In this document: in pieces, positions 26,797 to 58,664 of the stretch
Layout of the letters: every line of letters begins with the position of its first letter
How positions within the stretch are numbered: the stretch's first letter is position 1
Virus record (IMG/VR): IMGVR_UViG_3300027759_000046
Span: 1-64,000 of that record
Length of the DNA: 64,000 bases
Direction: 5' to 3' (one strand)
Translations under genes and position numbers: made by a program
Notes under the pieces: model-generated
Database searches by the model: none
Seen by the model: the letters and a program-made list of their open reading frames with translations, nothing else
Told to the model about the DNA's origin: nothing

Positions 26797-27540
26797 ATGT
26801 TCGATCAACACCAAACTGAGAAATTCCTATTTTTTGACATTGAAACTGCGGGCATTGAGGCCGATTTTTCAAACCTGTCGCCCAGACTACAAGAGCAATG
26901 GCAGCATCGCGCTGAGTTCTTAAGAAATCAACTTGCACAAAAGTATCCGGACAATGCAGGTAAAGAAACTGCTGAGCTTTTTGCTGAAAAGGCAGCATTG
27001 CAGGCTGAATTCGGTAGAATTGTTTGTATTTCATTTGGAAAAATTAAGTTTAATGAAGATCTTGAGCCAGTTGCTCAATTAGTTTCATATACTGGAACAG
27101 AAGAAGAGATCTTAACCAATTCTTTTAAATTAATAAGCGGCTTAACTAAACAAGGTGTCAAGCTAGTCGGTCACAATATTAAAAGATTCGATATTCCGTT
27201 CTTATGTAAAAGAGCTTTCATCAATCATATAGAAGTCCCAACAGCCCTTCAAGTCTGGGATCGTAAACCTTGGGAAATTCCAGTAGTCGATACTTCAGAA
27301 CTTTGGAGTTTTGGCGCATGGCAAGAAGGATTCACCTCACTTGATCTGCTTTCTGCCGTTTTAGGATTGCCTTCACCAAAAGATGAGATGAAAGGCTCAG
27401 AGGTTCATAGCGAATTTTATTCTGGCAACATCTTAGAGATTCAAAAATACTGTCAAAAAGACGTAGTTTCCTTAATAAAGATAATTCTTTCTCTTTCAAA
27501 CCTAAACCAATTGGAAGATTCGAATATAATAATCAAGTAA
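26797..27540 (+). CDS. Stand-alone DEDD 3'-5' exonuclease (PolB exonuclease-like family)
   Basis: FFDIETA (ExoI), AEFGRIVCIS, VGHNIKRFDIPFL (ExoII) and YCQKDV (ExoIII). Confidence 0.85.
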   Translation: MFDQHQTEKFLFFDIETAGIEADFSNLSPRLQEQWQHRAEFLRNQLAQKYPDNAGKETAELFAEKAALQAEFGRIVCISFGKIKFNEDLEPVAQLVSYTGTEEEILTNSFKLISGLTKQGVKLVGHNIKRFDIPFLCKRAFINHIEVPTALQVWDRKPWEIPVVDTSELWSFGAWQEGFTSLDLLSAVLGLPSPKDEMKGSEVHSEFYSGNILEIQKYCQKDVVSLIKIILSLSNLNQLEDSNIIIK

Positions 27541-42766: not shown

Positions 42767-43092
42767 TGAGCGAAAATAAAGAATTTACACCGTTATTCGA
42801 AAGAGTCCTAATTAAGCCGGACAGTGTCGAAACCAAAACAGAGACAGGCATCATCTTACCAGTTGAGTCCCGTAAACGTCCAAATACAGGCATTGTTATT
42901 TCGCTAGGTCACCTAGTTTCAGATAACTCAAAATGCCCAGTAAAAGAAGGCGACCGCGTTTTATACCAGAGATACTCTGGCTTAGATGTGAAAGTAAATG
43001 GCGAAGCGCATCATTTAGTTATGGCCAACGATTTAGTTGGAATTATAAATAATAATGCAAATAGCACAATTGAAATCGCAGACTATGCTTAA
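42766..43092 (+). CDS. groES: Co-chaperonin GroES
   Basis: PLFERVLIK, mobile loop KTETGIILP, VKEGDRVLY..YSG and DLVGII. Confidence 0.92.
   Translation: MSENKEFTPLFERVLIKPDSVETKTETGIILPVESRKRPNTGIVISLGHLVSDNSKCPVKEGDRVLYQRYSGLDVKVNGEAHHLVMANDLVGIINNNANSTIEIADYA
43045..43052 (+). promoter_or_regulatory. Late promoter motif (T)ATAAATAA embedded in the groES 3' end
   Basis: TATAAATAA about 33 nt upstream of the HAD-gene ATG at 43085. Confidence 0.55.
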
Positions 43093-44000: not shown

Positions 44001-47000
44001 TTAGAAAGAAGGCGTAAATCCAGTTGAGTTAGAAGCAAGTTGACCTCCAGCTCTTGTGATTGTAATACGGTTGATAAATTTGTGGATTCCACGTGGGAAG
44101 TCTACAATAATATCGATGATACCTGCATTATTCTCAAGAACTTCTGATCCATTGTTTGAATCATCAAAGATAACTTCAGCGCTTGCAATACCTCTAGCGT
44201 CTTGAACAGCTGCTAAGTAATTCTTAACTAGAGTTTTAACTCTCATACGAGTAGTTACATCATTAAAGTCAAATAAGAAGTTCAATAAGATTCTTTCAAT
44301 ATCTCTTTCAATTGTAACTAGAGCCTCTCTAACGTGGATGTTATTAAGAGCAGATTTTACTCTTTGGTAACCTGTGTTGTTTGAGAATACCATTACTCCG
44401 AAACCTCTACGTCTAACGATCAAGTTGAAACCAACTGGCTCTAAGAAATCACGATCTTCATTTGTTAAATCATATTCTAATCCAGAGATTTCTCCATCAG
44501 TTAAAATACCGCGTTTACCGCCTACAATTGAGAAAGTATTTCCGCTTGTGTATTTTTTCATGAACGCATTTGCAACGTACATTGCCGGTGGAATTGATTT
44601 GTTCTTACCGCTTTCAAAGATTACAACGTTTGGCATGAAATATGAAGAGTAAGAAGAGATTGGAATACCATTCTTATCTCCACTTGCAAATCCCATTGTA
44701 AACGCTGGATTTGAGTTTAAGTCTCCACCTGTTGCAATTGCTGCAGGCGAAACTAATCTAGTTGTTAGATCGATAAAGCTTGGATCAGCAGATCTTTCAT
44801 ATTGAGCAAATGATGGTGCATTACAGATAGCTAGTGCTTTTCCGTGATTTGCAGCAAGTTGAACAATTTGTTGTTTTGAGCTTGGTGAAATTTGACCTTC
44901 GAATGAATCGATAATATAACGGAAATCAACGGTCTCATTGTCAGCCAATGTCATTCCTAAGTTACTACCTTCCATTACGAAATCTAAGATCTTATCTTGA
45001 CGATCAGAAGTTCCATTTGGATAAAGGTCTACATCTGCTAATTTAAGAGCAGGAAGTATTGCACCTTTTAAGCTCTTAACGTAGTTTTTAATTCCTTTAA
45101 ATACTCTGATTGTAGAACCGTCAAAGTTAATTCCTAAGTTATTTCCATCAACTGATGATTCAGTTGTGATTGTGTACTTAAGAGTAGTTACTGTGCTGCT
45201 TGATGGCCCAAACGCAGTTTTTTGTATTTTTTGAGCGTATACTGATTTAATACGTAGTGCACGGCCTCTTTCAAGAGGATCGCCATTACTGTCAGTTTTG
45301 ATTTTTGCTTTGATGTATTGACCCGGTTTAAAGAAGTTATCTACAGTAAGTCTTTTTGATGAACTGTAAGAGTATCCAGCTGCAGCATTTGCAGTAGCAC
45401 TTTCATTTTTTGCAGGGTTTCCATAAAGAGTTGGATCAACTTCAAAAACAATTTTGTTTGGAGCAAAATAGCTAAAGTTAATAAACATGTCAGTGTCGCT
45501 TAGATCAAAATCATGTTTAAATGAATCAGCTGTCGCATTTACAATCCATAAGTATTCATCACCACCATCTAAAATAGTTTCAATATCTACTTGATTTGTT
45601 CTTGTGATGTCTGCGTAAACCGAGAATACTAAGTATTTTACTGAGTTTTGAGTTTTAAATTCTCCGTCAGTTCCAATGTATAAAGTTTGAACATTACTTG
45701 AAGCATCTGTGTACTTCAATAAGTCTCCGCTTTTAACGAATCCATTAGAGTATGCATTGTACAATTTGCTACCTTCAACTGCAATAATATTTGTAGTTGC
45801 GTTTAGATCAACGTAAGTTTCTCCGTTTGCGTAAGTTGAAGAATATGTGTCAACTGCAAAATAGAAAGTCGAATCAGTTGGCTTAGTGTAAGATAGTGTA
45901 TCAATAAGAGCAACTGGATCAATTCCAGTAATACCATTATCTACAGTGTATAGAGTTTTAGCAGTGTCTGTCGTATTTAATTCATCAACACCATAACCAA
46001 CTAAGTCAATACGTTGTTCAGCCATAGGCTCAGTAGAAGATCCACTATCAAATGTTGCATTAGTTAAGTCAATTAAGTCTACTTTTCTTGAATCAAGAGC
46101 GCAATAGATTCCAATTTGAGGAAATAATCTGTTGAAATTTGTATCTAATGAAACAAATGTACCAGTTAAATCTCTAAAGTCTGGAATAATACAACCTTGA
46201 GTTTTTGCAAGTAACTTAACCTCTTTTAGAGAAACGAAATCTCCGAGTTTAGAATCAATAATACCTGCTGCTGTGAAGTACTGTTTGTAAACTGGATCAG
46301 TTGACAATTTCAAGTAATCATTCCAATTACCTTCAACCACTACTAATTCAACAAAATAGTCAGCAACAATATCATCTGGATTTAAAAATTCCGGAATTTC
46401 AACCTTATCTCCTAACAAACGATAGTAATCCTTAACGCTAATATCATAACCGTTAGTATCAGCTACTCTAACCCAAGCAGTTACGTCTTTTCTAGATAAA
46501 TTAACTAACGTTAAAATTTTGTTAGCATCCTTATCAGCTTCACCGTATGTGCCTGGACTAAGAATATAATCATCTCCTAGTTTAATGTTCTTGTACTTAT
46601 TAATTTGAGCAGCGTCAGCAAACCATAACTTTTGAGTGTTATAGAAATGAGACATTGCGTCAGAATTTGAGTTAGCTGACCAAGTTGAGTTATTCGAAGC
46701 AGCTTCGGAGTTAAAGGTCTTAAAGTAAGCAATATCACTATCACTAACTGGTAAAACGTTCAATGCATAAACTGGTCCTTGTCTTAACCCTACGTCTATC
46801 GTACGATGAAAATAGCTACCATTTTTTTCTAATTTAGTATCGATTTCGCCGTATACTGCGTTTAGTGTTCGAGAGTCGTTTACGAGTACTACTGAATTGA
46901 TTGGTCCTTTTTTGCTAGAGCCAATCACAAGTCTACCGGTTGAAATCGGAAGACTTAGGTTAGTGCTTTCGTCAATTTCAATTGTGTATACACCACTGGA

Positions 47001-47033
47001 CTTGAACCTGTTCAGATTTAATTTTTCTGCCAT
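44001..47033 (-). CDS. gp18: Contractile tail sheath protein (T4 gp18-like)
   Basis: N-terminal FKSSGVYTIEIDES..GSSKKGPIN. C-terminal IPPAMYVA, NLIVRRRGFGVMVFSNNT, ALNNIHVREAL and NDVTTRMRV. Late motifs at 47059-47070. Confidence 0.93.
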   Translation of the reverse strand: MAEKLNLNRFKSSGVYTIEIDESTNLSLPISTGRLVIGSSKKGPINSVVLVNDSRTLNAVYGEIDTKLEKNGSYFHRTIDVGLRQGPVYALNVLPVSDSDIAYFKTFNSEAASNNSTWSANSNSDAMSHFYNTQKLWFADAAQINKYKNIKLGDDYILSPGTYGEADKDANKILTLVNLSRKDVTAWVRVADTNGYDISVKDYYRLLGDKVEIPEFLNPDDIVADYFVELVVVEGNWNDYLKLSTDPVYKQYFTAAGIIDSKLGDFVSLKEVKLLAKTQGCIIPDFRDLTGTFVSLDTNFNRLFPQIGIYCALDSRKVDLIDLTNATFDSGSSTEPMAEQRIDLVGYGVDELNTTDTAKTLYTVDNGITGIDPVALIDTLSYTKPTDSTFYFAVDTYSSTYANGETYVDLNATTNIIAVEGSKLYNAYSNGFVKSGDLLKYTDASSNVQTLYIGTDGEFKTQNSVKYLVFSVYADITRTNQVDIETILDGGDEYLWIVNATADSFKHDFDLSDTDMFINFSYFAPNKIVFEVDPTLYGNPAKNESATANAAAGYSYSSSKRLTVDNFFKPGQYIKAKIKTDSNGDPLERGRALRIKSVYAQKIQKTAFGPSSSTVTTLKYTITTESSVDGNNLGINFDGSTIRVFKGIKNYVKSLKGAILPALKLADVDLYPNGTSDRQDKILDFVMEGSNLGMTLADNETVDFRYIIDSFEGQISPSSKQQIVQLAANHGKALAICNAPSFAQYERSADPSFIDLTTRLVSPAAIATGGDLNSNPAFTMGFASGDKNGIPISSYSSYFMPNVVIFESGKNKSIPPAMYVANAFMKKYTSGNTFSIVGGKRGILTDGEISGLEYDLTNEDRDFLEPVGFNLIVRRRGFGVMVFSNNTGYQRVKSALNNIHVREALVTIERDIERILLNFLFDFNDVTTRMRVKTLVKNYLAAVQDARGIASAEVIFDDSNNGSEVLENNAGIIDIIVDFPRGIHKFINRITITRAGGQLASNSTGFTPSF

Positions 47034-47058
47034 CGCGTGCTATTGTTATTTTTTAAAG

Positions 47059-47070
47059 TTATTTATTTAT
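47059..47070 (-). promoter_or_regulatory. Overlapping late promoter motifs ATAAATAAATAA
   Basis: Upstream of the sheath ATG at 47033. A further copy lies at 47123-47130. Confidence 0.65.
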
Positions 47071-47201
47071 CAATCTATTCCCAAAATTGAGCTATTTTAA
47101 GTCTAGTTTGCTATTGCTAGAGTTATTTATCAGCAACCAAGGTGCTAAACTTAAACCCTTTTTCATTTATCGAATAAAAGAAACTATAAAACTGTACAAA
47201 T

Positions 47202-47669
47202 ATGGCAAATACTGACAATTCTTGCGCGAATTTAGAAATTGAAAACCTTTACTCAGCTAGCAAAGATACGCTAGGTGACATCATGACAATCCAGGCCGAG
47301 ACTCAAAAAAATGTTTACGGCTATAACTTCCAAGACATGACATTACGTGATTTAATGACCTTTTGGCACATGAATAATCATGCAATGATCGACGAGATCC
47401 ACGAGGCAACTGATGCTCTTGGCGGAATCAAAGACGGTGCAGGCAATGCAATCTGGAAGCGTTGGAAACAGGCTCACGAGAGCTTCTCTGACAAGAGATT
47501 CTCTGATCTATCTGAATCTGATCAACTTGAATGCAAATTTGAGATTGTGGACATACTGCACTTCTTTATGAATTATGCAATCTCAGTCGGAATGACTCCT
47601 CAGGAAATGTACAATATGTACATGTCAAAGAATGAAGAAAACCGAGCTCGTCAACAGAGAGGCTATTAA
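47202..47669 (+). CDS. gp56: dCTP/dUTP pyrophosphatase (T4 gp56-like, all-alpha NTP-PPase)
   Basis: NSCANL, IDEIHE, AIWKRWK, SDQLECKFEIVDILHFFMN and KNEENRARQQRGY parallel T4 gp56 (NECAHL, AVWKKWK, EDQLEIKFELVDIFHFVLN, KNKHNFERQDNGY). Confidence 0.85.
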   Translation: MANTDNSCANLEIENLYSASKDTLGDIMTIQAETQKNVYGYNFQDMTLRDLMTFWHMNNHAMIDEIHEATDALGGIKDGAGNAIWKRWKQAHESFSDKRFSDLSESDQLECKFEIVDILHFFMNYAISVGMTPQEMYNMYMSKNEENRARQQRGY

Positions 47670-47686
47670 TTTAGTATAATAATTTC

Positions 47687-48049
47687 ATGACACTATTAAT
47701 TGAACAGCTCAATACAGCTTTGGGGTATCCAGGGCGTATGATATCCGGTAGTAAAAGCGGTTACCGTGACCGTCATCCAGATAACTTTGCAATTTTTAAC
47801 TCAAATATCTGCACAGAGTCCGGCAAAGTCTGGTTCGGCGATATTGATTTAACCTTGCAAAAAGAAGCTCTTTGCGAATTAGCGAAGGCTCATAATGAAA
47901 CAATATACGTCCTATATGAAATGGACGCGCGTTTTGAAAACGAGGAAACTCCTCTATTGGGAAAAGCCCCAATCAAATTTTTACCAGATGGCACGTTTAA
48001 AGTTGCCGATCGTTTAGTACAATATATTTCTAAATCCTTTTTTGAATGA
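47687..48049 (+). CDS. Hypothetical protein (120 aa)
   Basis: ORF overlapping the polymerase start by 4 nt (ATGA). Confidence 0.75.
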   Translation: MTLLIEQLNTALGYPGRMISGSKSGYRDRHPDNFAIFNSNICTESGKVWFGDIDLTLQKEALCELAKAHNETIYVLYEMDARFENEETPLLGKAPIKFLPDGTFKVADRLVQYISKSFFE

Positions 48050-49437
48050 TAGTAAGCACAGAATTTAATAGTGACGACTCTACGTTAGTCATCTCGTATT
48101 ATGACGAGACTGGCAATATTGCGTTTGTAAAAAAACCAATCCAACAAACCGATCTTTTTAACTGGGCAACTACTCCAACTCCAACTGAGTTTAGAAATTG
48201 GGATAATCGCTTTCTTAAAAAGGCTCCAAACAAGTGGTTAAGTCGTTTTCGTCTTGAGGAGTTAACTCAAAGCCGTTTACACCAATCTGAACTTGATCTA
48301 ATCTATTCAGACCTTAGCCCCAAGAAATACTATCTCGATATTGAGATTCAATTGACTTCACAAGATTTCCCAGATCCAGCAAAAGCCTTGATGCCAGTTA
48401 ACTTAATTACGTTTGTTAACGAAGATAACGTGTGTTTCATTATGTCAACCATGAAAGACTTAGCACCAGACGTAATGCAACAAATGGAATTAGAGGTAAA
48501 TGATTACTTTAAAGCCCATAAACAAACATTCACGTTAAAATACTTGTTCTTTGAGAAAGAAGAAGATTTAATGGCAACATTTTTTCATAAAGTCCTTCCG
48601 AAAATTCCATTCTTAACTGGCTGGAACGTAATAGGATTTGACTGGATTTATCTTATTAATCGCTGCAAGCGTTTAAATATTGATCCAATGGAAACTATGC
48701 CATGTAAAAAAATGATTGGTCAAGCAAAAATGCCAATTCACTTAGGTCTTCTCGATTACATGGAAGTTTTCATGAATACTAAGCCATACAAAGTTGTTGA
48801 GAATTATAAACTAGACTACATTGCAAATCTAGTGTTAGGTACCACTAAATTGCATAGTGAATACGCAACTATGATGGAAGCTCAGCAAGATATTGAGAAT
48901 TTCGTTAAGTATAACGTGATTGATACGATTCTAGTCAAACTTCTTGAAGATAAACTTGGTCTACTTGACGTAGCTTTTGCGATTTCAAAATTTGCGAAGG
49001 TTGACGTATCTAAAGTATTCTCAGCAGTATTCATCACTGAAGCCTTAATGTGCCGTGAATTCTTAGAGCGTGGCCGTTACATGGCAAATGATAAACGTGA
49101 TATTGAGAGCGAAGCGACATACGATGGAGCATTCGTTGCAAAACCTGATCCAGGCTATTACAAGTACGTTTCATGTTTTGACTTTGCGTCCATGTATCCA
49201 AATATCCAAATCCAGTTTAATATTTCGCCAGATGCTTACATGGGTAAAAAGAAATCAGATTCTCAACTTACTCCTGAAACTATCTTAACTAAGAACGATA
49301 CAATATTTACCAAGAAATTCGATTCAGCCGCTCGAACTATATTAACTCGATTGTATAATGGTCGTGTCGATACGAAAAACGAAATGAAAAAACTAGAAGA
49401 ACAACTTCAAAGTGAAAAAACTACTAAAAATACTTAA
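48046..49437 (+). CDS. gp43: Family-B DNA polymerase, N-terminal subunit only (exonuclease + motif A)
   Basis: YLDIE (ExoI), GWNVIGFDW (ExoII), YKLDYIA..YNVIDT (ExoIII) and CFDFASMYPNIQIQFNISPD (motif A). Stops at TAA in the fingers helix; no KxxxNSxYG or YGDTDS motif. Confidence 0.85.
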   Translation: MIVSTEFNSDDSTLVISYYDETGNIAFVKKPIQQTDLFNWATTPTPTEFRNWDNRFLKKAPNKWLSRFRLEELTQSRLHQSELDLIYSDLSPKKYYLDIEIQLTSQDFPDPAKALMPVNLITFVNEDNVCFIMSTMKDLAPDVMQQMELEVNDYFKAHKQTFTLKYLFFEKEEDLMATFFHKVLPKIPFLTGWNVIGFDWIYLINRCKRLNIDPMETMPCKKMIGQAKMPIHLGLLDYMEVFMNTKPYKVVENYKLDYIANLVLGTTKLHSEYATMMEAQQDIENFVKYNVIDTILVKLLEDKLGLLDVAFAISKFAKVDVSKVFSAVFITEALMCREFLERGRYMANDKRDIESEATYDGAFVAKPDPGYYKYVSCFDFASMYPNIQIQFNISPDAYMGKKKSDSQLTPETILTKNDTIFTKKFDSAARTILTRLYNGRVDTKNEMKKLEEQLQSEKTTKNT

Positions 49438-49447
49438 GAAAATTATT

Positions 49448-50092
49448 ATGGGATACGATATTGATGCACTAATGGCTGTAAAAGACAGCTTTCAGAACCA
49501 AAACTTTCAATGGGTTAAAACTAAAGACCGTTCTAAATTAGGAAAGGTCGTTAAAGTAACCGACATTGCTCCAGGTAGAAATGGATACGTTGCTCAGTTG
49601 TCAGACGGTTCAACCATTCCAACTGACCGTCTAACTAGCGATCTATTAATGCTAATGGACGAACAACCTGCCTTATCAATGGAAGAGATCATGTCAATAA
49701 ATTACGTACCGGGACTATCAGACGCTGAAATTCAAGTAGCAGATACTATTCCAGCAGATTTTAAGCAGGAAATCTTGTCTCAGCCAAAGCCTCAAGTTCA
49801 AATAGAACAAGCTTCACCTCAAGTTCAGGTCAGGACACCGAATTCTGAACCTGGTGATCTGTTTGGCATGTTTTCGCTAGAAGAGACTGACCTAAGCCTA
49901 ATTGTATCAGTCAAGTTGCCGGCTAAGAACTTGCTAAAGATGATGTATTCAAATTCACAAGATCAGGAACAATTCTTAAATAGGTTGGCCGGCTATATAA
50001 ATAATAGTGTAACACCTGATTCAATTAAAGACTCATTAAGAAAGTCATTGGGTCAAGATAAAAAGAAGAAAATGGATGCAACTTCAGCCTAA
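49448..50092 (+). CDS. Hypothetical protein
   Basis: ATG 49448 preferred (the track uses GTG 49412). No polymerase motifs. Confidence 0.75.
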   Translation: MGYDIDALMAVKDSFQNQNFQWVKTKDRSKLGKVVKVTDIAPGRNGYVAQLSDGSTIPTDRLTSDLLMLMDEQPALSMEEIMSINYVPGLSDAEIQVADTIPADFKQEILSQPKPQVQIEQASPQVQVRTPNSEPGDLFGMFSLEETDLSLIVSVKLPAKNLLKMMYSNSQDQEQFLNRLAGYINNSVTPDSIKDSLRKSLGQDKKKKMDATSA

Positions 50093-50663
50093 CAAAATAA
50101 ACAAAAGCACTTCCCAAATTTTAGGTGGGGCATTTGATGTAGTTTCTTTGACTCGAGACACCGATAAAGCGGATCGTCTTATGTGCAAGGTAAACTACAT
50201 TGCTGTTTTACCTTTTGAGAGAACAGCAGACGATCGTATTAAAGCAATTTACGGTCTAAAATTTGAAAATCATGCAACTGGCCAATCTGATACTAGTTTA
50301 TTAGTTGACACGGTTGATCCATCCAAAGACCAAACTCCATTCGACACAGTTTGTCGTGCTCTACTTGAAGAGGCTGGAGTAAATATTGAAGAGCTTGGAG
50401 TAGACGAGAACGATATTTACTATTTAGGTAATATTTCAACCTCAATTCCAGTTAATTCTAAGTTTAAGTGTTATGCAGTTGACTTAACTAAAGCTGCAAA
50501 CCCAGAATCACCAATCGAGTTCGCTCGAACCCTTTCCAAATCAAAATTCGACAAAGATTCTTCTGAAATTGTTAAACTTGGGTTTCACCAAGTTGTAAAT
50601 GGCGATTTTACTGATTCAACTATCCTAGCCGGCTCATTTTTATTAGTTTCATACTTTAATTGA
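50076..50663 (+). CDS. Degenerate Nudix-fold protein
   Basis: IAVLPF..DQTPFDTVCRALLEEAGV..YYLG resembles a Nudix box, with substitutions at the conserved G, E and RE positions. Confidence 0.6.
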   Translation: MQLQPNKINKSTSQILGGAFDVVSLTRDTDKADRLMCKVNYIAVLPFERTADDRIKAIYGLKFENHATGQSDTSLLVDTVDPSKDQTPFDTVCRALLEEAGVNIEELGVDENDIYYLGNISTSIPVNSKFKCYAVDLTKAANPESPIEFARTLSKSKFDKDSSEIVKLGFHQVVNGDFTDSTILAGSFLLVSYFN

Positions 50664-50689
50664 AACTAGAGTGAATCTCAGTGTACAAG
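50662..50689 (+). promoter_or_regulatory. Putative phage early/middle promoter GAAACT-N16-TACAAG
   Basis: Intergenic motif upstream of uvsX. Confidence 0.65.
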
Positions 50690-50715
50690 AATACTGAAAT
50701 TAAACTCTAAATAAA

Positions 50716-51909
50716 ATGGCAAAAACTACAATGGACGCTTTCGCAAAGTTTAACGACTTGCTAGAGAAAAAGGTAAAATCTAAAATTGAAATCCGTGGAT
50801 TCTCCGATATCGAAGAGTACATCCCAACCGGAAACTACTTATTAAATGCACAAATGTCTGGCTCAGTATTTGGCGGATATCCAAACACTAGAAGTATTGG
50901 AATCGCTGGAGACTCTGGCGCTGGTAAAACATTCCTCTGCCTGAATGCAGTTCGCGAATTACAGAAGAAAGATTACATGGTTATCTACATTGATACCGAA
51001 GGTGCAATCGATTCGACTGATTACGTAAAATTTGGAGTAGATCTTACTAAACTAAAGTACTTACGCATGGGTCTAATTAGCGAAGTTAAATTCTACGTTA
51101 ATGACCTAATTGACACAATCAAAGAGAACCCAGGCCTTAAAATTGCTCTATTCGTTGACTCAGTCGGAATGTTAGACACAGATAAGAGTAAACGTGACAT
51201 GGATGCAGGTAAAAATGCGGCAGATATGGGTCTTCGTGCAAAAGAGATGAGATCGTTATTTAAGTCTCTAACTCTAGACCTTTCAAATTACAAAATCCCA
51301 TTCATCTTTACAAACCACACCTATGCCTCTATGGATCAATACACTCCAAAGGGAATGTCTGGAGGTGGAGGTCCTGAGTTCTCAGCTTCAATTATCTTGA
51401 TGTTGAGTAAAGGAACTCTTCGTGATGAGGCTAAGACCACAACCGGAATCATTGTTAGATCCAAGACAAAAAAGAATCGTCTTGCTAAACCAATCGATAT
51501 TGAATTCCATATCTCATTCCATAAGGGTATGAATCCGTTCGTTGGTCTTGAACAATACGTAAATTGGGAAAATTGCGGAGTAGGTCGCGGCAATAAGTTG
51601 ACAGAAAAAGAATTTTCAAAACTTAAACCAGACGAAGCTGACCTATGTTCAAAATTTGAACTTGGCGGTGAAACTTTCTACTTTTTACCTAAGAAATTAG
51701 GAAAAACATATATTGTCAGACATAACGGTGATGCAGTTCCAGTTAAGGAATTCTTTTCAAATAGACTTTTCACAAATGAAGTTTTAACAGAACTCGATGA
51801 GAAGGTTATTAAGCCAACGTTTAAATTCCCTGAAACTCAGGATGGAATTGATACAATGGAAATTGATGAATTAGAAGACTTAACTCCAACTGAAGAGCAT
51901 GACCTTTAA
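50716..51909 (+). CDS. uvsX: RecA-like recombinase UvsX
   Basis: IPTGNYLLN, Walker A GDSGAGKT, YIDTEGA, LFVDSVG, FTNHTY and SGGGG..FSASII. Confidence 0.93.
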   Translation: MAKTTMDAFAKFNDLLEKKVKSKIEIRGFSDIEEYIPTGNYLLNAQMSGSVFGGYPNTRSIGIAGDSGAGKTFLCLNAVRELQKKDYMVIYIDTEGAIDSTDYVKFGVDLTKLKYLRMGLISEVKFYVNDLIDTIKENPGLKIALFVDSVGMLDTDKSKRDMDAGKNAADMGLRAKEMRSLFKSLTLDLSNYKIPFIFTNHTYASMDQYTPKGMSGGGGPEFSASIILMLSKGTLRDEAKTTTGIIVRSKTKKNRLAKPIDIEFHISFHKGMNPFVGLEQYVNWENCGVGRGNKLTEKEFSKLKPDEADLCSKFELGGETFYFLPKKLGKTYIVRHNGDAVPVKEFFSNRLFTNEVLTELDEKVIKPTFKFPETQDGIDTMEIDELEDLTPTEEHDL

Positions 51910-57782: not shown

Positions 57783-58664
57783 ATGATAGTATTTAAAGGC
57801 CAGACTTTTGCCGAGTGTTACCGTGACTCGCTAATCAATCTTTTCGAAGATGGTATTGAAAATAATGCCAGAGGCACCGTGAGCAAGGAGTTGCTTGACG
57901 TTGCGTTAGTTGTCGAAGATCCAACTCAATGCCTATATCAAAACGATAGGCGAGGTTCTCAAAAGAAGTATATTGCGGCTGAATTTTTGTGGTATTACTC
58001 AGGGCGTAATGACGTTAAGTTTATTGCGAATTGGGCTAAGTTTTGGGAATCAATCCAAAACGAAGACGGTTCAGCTAACTCAGCTTACGGCAACCTAATC
58101 TTTAAGGTTAGAAATCAGCACAATCTCTCCCAATACCAGTGGGCAATGCAAAGCTTAATCAGCGATCCTAACACGAGACAAGCTGTAATGCATTTCAATA
58201 TGCCGACTCACCAGTACAATGGAAACAAGGATTTTGTTTGTACAATGTACGCAAACTGCCATATCCGAAACAATAAGTTCTATATGTCAGTTTACATGAG
58301 AAGCAATGACGCTGTTTGGGGTACACCAACTGACGTAGCTTTCTTCTGTTCTTTACAGATGCAAATGTATTCTCAATTAAAAAACTTCTATCCAGAGTTA
58401 GAGCTTGGTTCGTATACTCACGTTGCAAATTCATACCACGTTTACGATAGACATTATGAATTAGGAACAGCAATGCTAGAGACAGCATTCAAACCAGAAG
58501 CACTTCCACACGTTGTCGCAGATCTAGTCGATATCGATGGAGAGCCTAGCCGTAATTTATTAATCTTAATGGATGCGTTATTTGCAAACGATGAGCCGTA
58601 TCTAATTTTTCAAGATGGTCCAGATATGTTAAAATGGATTCATACAAATGTTTCAAAGAAATAA
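57783..58664 (+). CDS. gp42: Thymidylate-synthase-superfamily enzyme, most like dCMP hydroxymethylase (T4 gp42)
   Basis: NSAYG, DPNTRQA, DFVCT (catalytic Cys), MRSNDAVWGTPTD and SYHVYDRH align with T4 gp42 (NSNYG, NPDSRRG, DFMCT, MRSNDVVFGFRND, SLHVYSRH). Asp sits where dUMP-specific ThyA has Asn. Confidence 0.75.
   Translation: MIVFKGQTFAECYRDSLINLFEDGIENNARGTVSKELLDVALVVEDPTQCLYQNDRRGSQKKYIAAEFLWYYSGRNDVKFIANWAKFWESIQNEDGSANSAYGNLIFKVRNQHNLSQYQWAMQSLISDPNTRQAVMHFNMPTHQYNGNKDFVCTMYANCHIRNNKFYMSVYMRSNDAVWGTPTDVAFFCSLQMQMYSQLKNFYPELELGSYTHVANSYHVYDRHYELGTAMLETAFKPEALPHVVADLVDIDGEPSRNLLILMDALFANDEPYLIFQDGPDMLKWIHTNVSKK

Follow-up and report, generated by a model that had tools for sequence, protein, structure and literature searches.

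The DNA analyzed here (the window) covers positions 1 to 64,000 of the IMG/VR virus record IMGVR_UViG_3300027759_000046, that is, the first 64 kb of a 253,137-bp metagenome assembly whose completeness is estimated at 94% by CheckV. On the + strand of the window lies an open reading frame (ORF) of 463 amino acids (48046..49437; TAA stop at 49435-49437) which, based on Pfam, PHROGs, and an alignment to gp43 of phage RB69, encodes the N-terminal domain, the 3'-5' exonuclease, the first part of the palm with motif A, and the first finger helix of a family-B DNA polymerase (PolB), and which we refer to as the N-half. It matches Pfam families DNA_pol_B_exo1 (PF03104; 38.9 bits, cut-off 23) and DNA_pol_B (PF00136; 55.4 bits, cut-off 23), the latter over profile positions 17-145 of 453 only. 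In PHROGs, it matches phrog_2062, a 502-position profile of a family that consists of N-terminal halves only, at 1e-69, and nearly as well the full-length T4-type family phrog_262, of which it covers positions 71-499 of 856. Residues 97-404 align with RB69 gp43 residues 111-436, which places the exonuclease motifs Exo I (D98-I-E100; 48337..48345; RB69 D114/E116), Exo II (NVIGFD, residues 194-199; 48625..48642; RB69 D222), and Exo III (YNVID, residues 289-293; 48910..48924; RB69 D327), as well as polymerase motif A with the first catalytic aspartate (DFASMYP, residues 379-385; 49180..49200). Judged by these alignments, Exo I-III and motif A are intact. A multiple alignment placed R440 and K444 of the first finger helix (49363..49377) onto RB69 R482 and K486, the triphosphate-binding residues of that helix (PMC3061061), and the protein ends 19 residues past K444, so that the TAA falls in the finger tip, at approximately RB69 residue 505. 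An earlier, sequence-only reading of the window had reported an intact exonuclease and motif A with a clean TAA just after; both statements were confirmed, although the TAA lies 15 codons past the quoted residues EMKKL, which makes "just after" roughly right. As a separate observation, two relatives from a more distant subclade at ~50% identity (P0096 and P0108) carry a glutamine at the position of K444/RB69 K486 (R-I-N-T-Q and R-I-K-T-Q, respectively), an unexpected change at a triphosphate-contacting residue beside the split.

The same reading had stated that no ORF in the window carries polymerase motif B or C, and this was borne out by a six-frame scan of the window, which returned no match to K...NS.YG, K...N[ST].[YF]G, [YF].DTDS, or DTD[SG]. 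Profile searches of the window likewise gave no polymerase match besides the N-half and an exonuclease-like ORF at 26797-27540. The latter, a stand-alone ORF of 247 amino acids on the + strand, resembles a PolB/DnaQ-type 3'-5' exonuclease domain (phrog_262 positions 102-218, E 1.3e-6; motifs FFDIET, HNIKRFD, and YCQKD; no NCBIfam match) and appears to be a second proofreading-type nuclease that is not linked to the polymerase.

When the search with PF00136 and phrog_262 was extended to the whole record, a second polymerase match appeared at 94345-95439 (+), outside the window and on the same contig. It belongs to a gene at 94354-95811 (+) encoding 485 amino acids (hereafter the C-half), which contains motif C, the KKKY motif, the thumb, and, on the second finger helix, motif B. 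The C-half lies 46 kb downstream of the N-half on the same strand (46.3 kb from start to start). It scores 50.1 bits against PF00136 (55.7 bits with its frame neighbours; cut-off 23), covers positions 495-838 of the 856 of phrog_262 in the genome search (499-838 by hmmscan), and matches phrog_1918, a PHROG of C-halves only, at 8e-61. Its residues 19-222 align with RB69 residues 559-752, and a motif scan located motif B (KILINSFYG, K20-G28; 94411-94437), motif C (YTDTDS; the DTDS part at 94645-94656), and KKKY (residue 172; 94867-94878), all on the + strand, while the C-terminal ~120 amino acids gave no family match. The start codon lies 19 residues ahead of the motif B lysine, K20, the equivalent of RB69 K560.

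The two halves fit together as the parts of one enzyme. They tile the full-length phrog_262 profile without a gap (71-499 and 495-838 of 856), and against the unsplit gp43 of cyanophage ACG-2014a (KJ019116) the tblastn match of one half ends at 132986 and that of the other starts at 132984, an overlap of one codon. Together they amount to 948 amino acids (463 + 485). Motifs A, B, C, and KKKY each occur once in the 253-kb genome, spread over both halves, and the search of the whole record with PF00136 and phrog_262 returned only the two halves and the one exonuclease-like ORF. No match to the Pfam models of PolA (PF00476) or PolIII-alpha (PF07733) was detected in the 253-kb genome.

As the sequence was assembled from a metagenome, an error of assembly or sequencing could have produced the stop in the finger tip, or the stop could be a recent mutation that inactivated the gene and left a decaying pseudogene. 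Only one sequencing run contains the stretch in full at identity; it may come from the source sample of the record and was left out as support. Two Logan contigs from metagenomes of two other studies bridge the stop with no gap and leave it unchanged: one from X4, a riverine metagenome (record 18; 49102-49642), and one from X5 (record 25; 49050-49488). A word search for homologues of the N-half retrieved 479 proteins at E<=1e-10. Among the best 120 of these 479, all but ~12 shorter proteins, mostly on contigs of 1-2 kb, are 456-478 amino acids long, at identities from 97% down to 49% and on contigs of up to 293 kb; the position of the stop is thus common to more than 100 homologues. The gene next downstream of the N-half, within 17-90 nt of its end, is at every one of the 49 related IMG/VR loci a homologue of the same unrelated ORF, and never a C-half. 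The two halves also lie on one strand in each of five related records (131-270 kb, 64-94% identity), at 44.6-51.4 kb from start to start, so that they occur together in 6/6 genomes examined. Comparison with the closest genome gave nonsynonymous and synonymous divergences (dN and dS) of 0.037 and ~1.24 for the N-half, a dN/dS of ~0.03, and, for the C-half, corresponding proportions of differing sites (pN and pS) of 0.075 and 0.745, the latter saturated; both halves are under strong purifying selection. Because of the bridging contigs, the homologue lengths, the gene order, the conserved layout, the selection, and the lack of another polymerase by the Pfam PolA, PolIII-alpha, and PolB models, both the artefact and the pseudogene are excluded, with a residual probability that is close to nil. 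The two outcomes that the sequence-only reading had named as fatal to a split, namely a misassembly or indel hiding a full-length gene and a separate intact polB beside a decaying copy, are accordingly rejected and not found, respectively.

Both genes are present, intact, and unique in the genome, and have the same layout in related genomes. The sequence-only reading had proposed a heterodimeric polymerase with a distant partner gene and suggested that the halves be co-folded. The co-fold passed its controls: N-half and C-half together reached an interaction prediction score from aligned errors (ipSAE) of 0.85 in three runs, vs. 0.00 for the best of three controls, with a contact agreement between runs of at least 96% and a predicted local distance difference test (pLDDT) score of at least 75 for the partner. 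Of 78 solved complexes, 51 reach the mark used here, as do 2 of 108 mismatched pairs. Two sets of contacts were predicted, both as expected for such a polymerase. N-half residues 359-391, which include the motif A strand, contact C-half residues 95-107 of the motif C hairpin, with the N-half strand at 371-378 pairing with the motif C strand; and N-half residues 429-457 contact C-half residues 2-30, which brings the two finger helices together. The partner gene at 94354-95811 and the conserved layout support the proposed heterodimer, with which the co-fold agrees.

In the mechanism that we propose, the N-half would supply the N-terminal domain, the proofreading exonuclease, the palm strand with motif A, and the first finger helix, whereas the C-half would supply the rest of the fingers (the second helix, with motif B) as well as motif C, KKKY, and the thumb. 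Once translated, the chains would assemble non-covalently into a single active site through two contacts: in the palm sheet, where the strands of motifs A and C would pair, and in the fingers, where the two helices would pack antiparallel. Assembly of this kind has been demonstrated biochemically for gp43 of Aeromonas phage 25, which is likewise split at the fingertip, and for an engineered split Pfu polymerase. Alternatively, the halves may work apart, the N-half as a stand-alone exonuclease or primer-binding factor and the C-half with some other partner, with no obligate heterodimer. Their placement in separate transcription units 46 kb from each other would fit such a division of labor, and the PolB-exonuclease-like ORF at 26797-27540 shows that stand-alone exonucleases do occur in this genome. 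However, the active site requires the motif A aspartate of the N-half and the motif C aspartates of the C-half, and triphosphate binding requires R440 and K444 of the N-half as well as K20 of the C-half (residue roles from PMC3061061), which means that neither half can polymerise alone. Given also that both halves are present in 6/6 genomes examined and that their co-fold passes its controls, we consider it very unlikely that the halves function apart.

A further alternative is that the halves are joined into a single-chain polymerase by trans-spliced intron halves or a split intein, and a trans-spliced product had indeed been the second suggestion of the earlier reading. There are precedents that make this worth considering: gene 43B of Aeromonas phage 25 is annotated with a group IA2 intron, endonuclease inserts often split the polymerase genes of Jug phages (PMC12880540), and the C-halves of two relatives, Lak-A2 and LR756500, are themselves interrupted. 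In the present genome, however, an Rfam search at E<=1 found no intron family within 47000-51000 or around the C-half. The break tiles the unsplit gp43 without surplus residues, which leaves no room for split-intein fragments (~100 + 35 amino acids), and contigs from lake metatranscriptomes that cover the N-half region at >=99% identity contain no joints. A trans-spliced product was therefore not borne out, and joining of the halves by either route seems extremely unlikely. As to the interrupted C-halves, both are broken between motifs B and C, into pieces 1-2 kb apart (Lak-A2, MK250019.1: 345517-345759 and 346772-347575; LR756500.1: 251758-252414 and 248813-249598); the interruption may be an intron or an insert (intein or endonuclease), or the polymerase may come in three pieces.

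We conclude that the only recognisable replicative polymerase of this phage is, very probably, a T4-type family-B enzyme made as two separately translated chains; that these chains form a heterodimer and that the heterodimer is an active polymerase we infer. Several points weigh against this conclusion. With the record 94% complete by CheckV, the missing 6% could hold a further polymerase. The co-fold may owe its pass to the model's familiarity with single-chain PolB structures and is a sign of likeness to an intact polymerase, not proof of binding, and the RNA-library contigs that cover the N-half may be DNA carry-over. The halves lie in different transcription units with at least 45 predicted ORFs on both strands between them, which puts co-translation or ribosomal bypass out of the question, and equal amounts of the two chains are not ensured by the gene layout; scans for sigma-70 promoters gave results at or below shuffle expectation. 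Finally, all data for this phage are metagenomic.

The N-half gene sits in a block of + strand genes. Upstream, family scans identified a MazG/dUTPase_2-like nucleoside triphosphate pyrophosphohydrolase (47202-47669, +), and many of the 49 related loci have a gene of this kind just ahead of their N-half. Between it and the N-half lies an ORF of 120 amino acids (47687-48049, +), whose stop overlaps the start codon of the N-half (ATGA). A putative tail-sheath-like protein of 1010 amino acids, assigned by sequence impression, is encoded directly upstream of the N-half operon and divergent from it (44001-47033, -). Directly 3' of the N-half are two ORFs (49448-50092 and 50076-50663, both +) that are conserved in 49/49 related loci at 30-87% identity and have no match in Pfam, PHROGs, or NCBIfam. 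The first of them, with a likely start at 49448, shows no similarity to polymerases and gave neither a family match nor an atlas match; we considered whether it is a relic of an ancestral intervening gene and rejected this, since it does not resemble the ORF that separates the halves in Vibrio phage henriette 12B8 (E 7-12). The second contains a Nudix-like "...LLEEAG..." stretch.

The region between the two halves encodes a UvsX-like recombinase, a DnaB-type helicase, SbcD, SbcC, and a UvsW-like helicase, together with a thymidylate-synthase-superfamily protein, a prohead protease, baseplate proteins, and glycosyltransferases. The thymidylate-synthase-superfamily ORF (57783-58664, +) scores 61.8 bits vs. 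a cut-off of 327, far under every thymidylate synthase equivalog cut-off; together with the MazG-like gene at 47202-47669, it could belong to a predicted modified-pyrimidine pathway, for example as a hydroxymethylase with an enzyme that clears canonical deoxynucleoside triphosphates. On the - strand of this region is a gene for a protein of 983 amino acids (85209-88160) with an N-terminal RNA-ligase-like region (phrog_548, E 5e-7, residues 24-255) and ~700 further residues without assignment. The C-half is the first gene of a + strand block past a divergent intergenic region and is followed by genes for a primase, a head-closure protein, and the portal. A search for a T4-type sliding clamp gave no match to PF02916, which is not evidence of absence; the clamp of Sphingomonas phage PAU was found only by more sensitive searches (PMC4889955).

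We also considered a promoter common to the halves, which the sigma-70 scans did not support. The word TTATTTATTT occurs upstream of both operons; with 11 copies in this AT-rich genome, it was not counted as evidence. Separately, the T4-type late-promoter word TATAAATA occurs in 12 copies in 253 kb (e.g., at 43044, 49996, 66439 on the - strand, and 96918), and 10 of the 12 lie within 150 nt upstream of the start of a same-strand ORF, including those for the prohead protease and the head-closure protein; this placement suggests a gp55-type late transcription. As for its habitat, the stretch or close relatives of it were found in lake, river, and some marine or other aquatic metagenomes (13 studies) and in lake metatranscriptome libraries, and the phage group appears to be mainly freshwater.

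In the phage collection searched, the nearest relatives are the huge-phage records LR756500-504 and LR745206, the Lak megaphages, Sphingomonas phage PAU, and Chryseobacterium phage MA9V-2, at 24-34% identity; the huge-phage and Lak records carry no annotation. Setting aside LR745206, LR756502, and LR756503, the relatives examined end their N-half frame at the same finger tip. This holds when TAG is not read as a stop: among five huge-phage and Lak loci re-read in this way, slight changes appeared in the two from Lak only, and the N-half ended where it did before. The distance between the halves varies widely: 2.4 kb in PAU (gp105/gp110), 3.6 kb in MA9V-2, ~10 kb in LR756500, 221 kb in Lak-A2, and 281 kb in LR756504, with the halves on opposite strands in the last two. 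The polymerases of Vibrio phages henriette 12B8 and 2.058.O are split as well, and one or two ORFs separate their halves.

For the N-half region we computed a maximum-likelihood tree from 23 rows and 438 columns; it has no root, samples few lineages, and shows long branches for PAU, MA9V-2, and Lak. In this tree, a branch with 100/100 support has on one side the present phage and its freshwater relatives, the LR7565xx records, Lak-A2, PAU, and MA9V-2, and all 15 of these 15 rows are split. On the other side, gp43A of phage 25 is sister to the unsplit RB69 (100/100), four Kyanoviridae are unsplit, and the henriette pair is split. This pattern points to one old split as the likely origin for the large clade, with separate events elsewhere. 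A bolder view, which we find conceivable and hold with somewhat less than even confidence, is that the fingertip split, far from a sporadic accident, is both ancestral and obligate across a deep branch of large phages that comprises the freshwater 250-270-kb group, PAU-like phages, Lak, and other huge phages, and in which the two genes would have drifted 2-281 kb apart after a single ancient break. If this is true, a two-chain replicase with unlinked genes would be the norm across much of the huge-phage world, and the all-split clade from PAU to Lak would show that a heterodimeric PolB can be stable for a very long time without gene linkage. One might then ask whether the open finger tip persists for some benefit, perhaps in the handling of modified nucleotides, a possibility to which the engineered Pfu split discussed below points. 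A literature search that reached few subscription journals found no description of an unlinked fingertip-split PolB in PAU-like, Lak, or huge phages.

These results have a practical side. Annotation pipelines label each half "DNA polymerase" or miss one of them, and a reader of a single window such as the present one would wrongly infer a phage without a catalytic polymerase. Knowing that the partner may lie tens to hundreds of kb away avoids false calls of pseudogenes or missing replicases in the genomes of large phages and megaphages. Moreover, natural, strongly conserved fingertip splits are ready material for studying the effect of an open finger tip on nucleotide selection, a question that the engineered Pfu split raised and left open.

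How does this polymerase compare with the split family-B enzymes that are known? The sequence-only reading had stated that some T4-related phages and methanogens have PolB split at the finger tip, with the two genes close together in the phages; this is correct for the T4-related phages, but in the methanogen the split is in the palm (PMC3061061). A gp43 split at the finger tip (43A/43B) occurs in the T4-related phages 44RR, 25, 31, 65, and 133, with cistrons 2 bp to 3 kb apart (Petrov et al. 2006, 2010, cited in PMC2988022, PMC3061061). The split in T4-like phages is described as a sporadic event caused by the insertion of mobile elements. In phage 25, gp43A and gp43B co-purify and are active (PMC2988022). 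The break is the same as here, in the loop between the finger helices, with the end of phage 25 gp43A falling within ~15 alignment columns of that of the N-half, and motif A is likewise carried by one of two separately translated chains and motifs B and C by the other. These phages differ in that their two genes lie in one gene cluster (in phage 25, with a single homing-endonuclease gene between 43A and 43B), whereas in the present phage 46 kb and at least 45 genes, encoded on both strands, separate them. They differ in lineage as well: phage 25 gp43A groups with RB69 (100/100), and the N-half lies across a 100/100 branch with PAU, Lak, and the huge phages, so that the two splits likely arose separately. 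PAU, MA9V-2, Lak, LR756500, LR756501, and LR756504 share both the fingertip break and the branch with the present phage and differ from it in the distance between the halves.

Unlinked genes are known from two other systems. The polymerase of PhiKZ consists of DNAP-N (gp82) and DNAP-C (gp50), which are encoded by unlinked genes and form a stable 1:1 complex with a cryo-electron microscopy structure (Basu et al. 2026 preprint, PMC13648687). As in the present case, this is a family-B enzyme of a jumbo phage, and its motifs A and C are divided between the N and C subunits, respectively. However, PhiKZ is split inside a large palm insertion just past motif A, so that both finger helices are on its C subunit, whereas here the first helix is on the N-half. 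In addition, PhiKZ belongs to a very divergent PolB clade and has ~470 extra residues in palm-insertion and little-finger domains, in contrast to the ordinary size of the present halves, whose combined 948 amino acids leave no room for a 350-amino-acid palm insertion of the PhiKZ type. In the archaeon Methanothermobacter thermautotrophicus, one family-B polymerase is likewise encoded by two unlinked genes, which are 85 kb apart (Kelman et al. 1999, cited in PMC3061061); the split there is in the palm, ~83 residues C-terminal to the finger-tip position (PMC3061061), and the system is archaeal and not viral.

An engineered counterpart is the split Pfu polymerase (Hansen et al. 2011, PMC3061061), in which the break is at or near the finger tip as here and the fragments reconstitute and behave like the wild type. 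Unlike the present enzyme, it is a man-made construct with two translationally coupled cistrons, and Q484R was needed in addition for it to accept gamma-phosphate analogues more readily (PMC3061061). Taken together, the present phage is a further example of a fingertip-split family-B polymerase, set apart from the phage cases described so far by nothing but its lineage and the linkage of its genes. It combines the fingertip break with unlinked genes; what is new is its place in a deep clade that is split in all rows sampled, that also includes PAU, Lak, and other huge phages, and in which the halves lie 2-281 kb apart.

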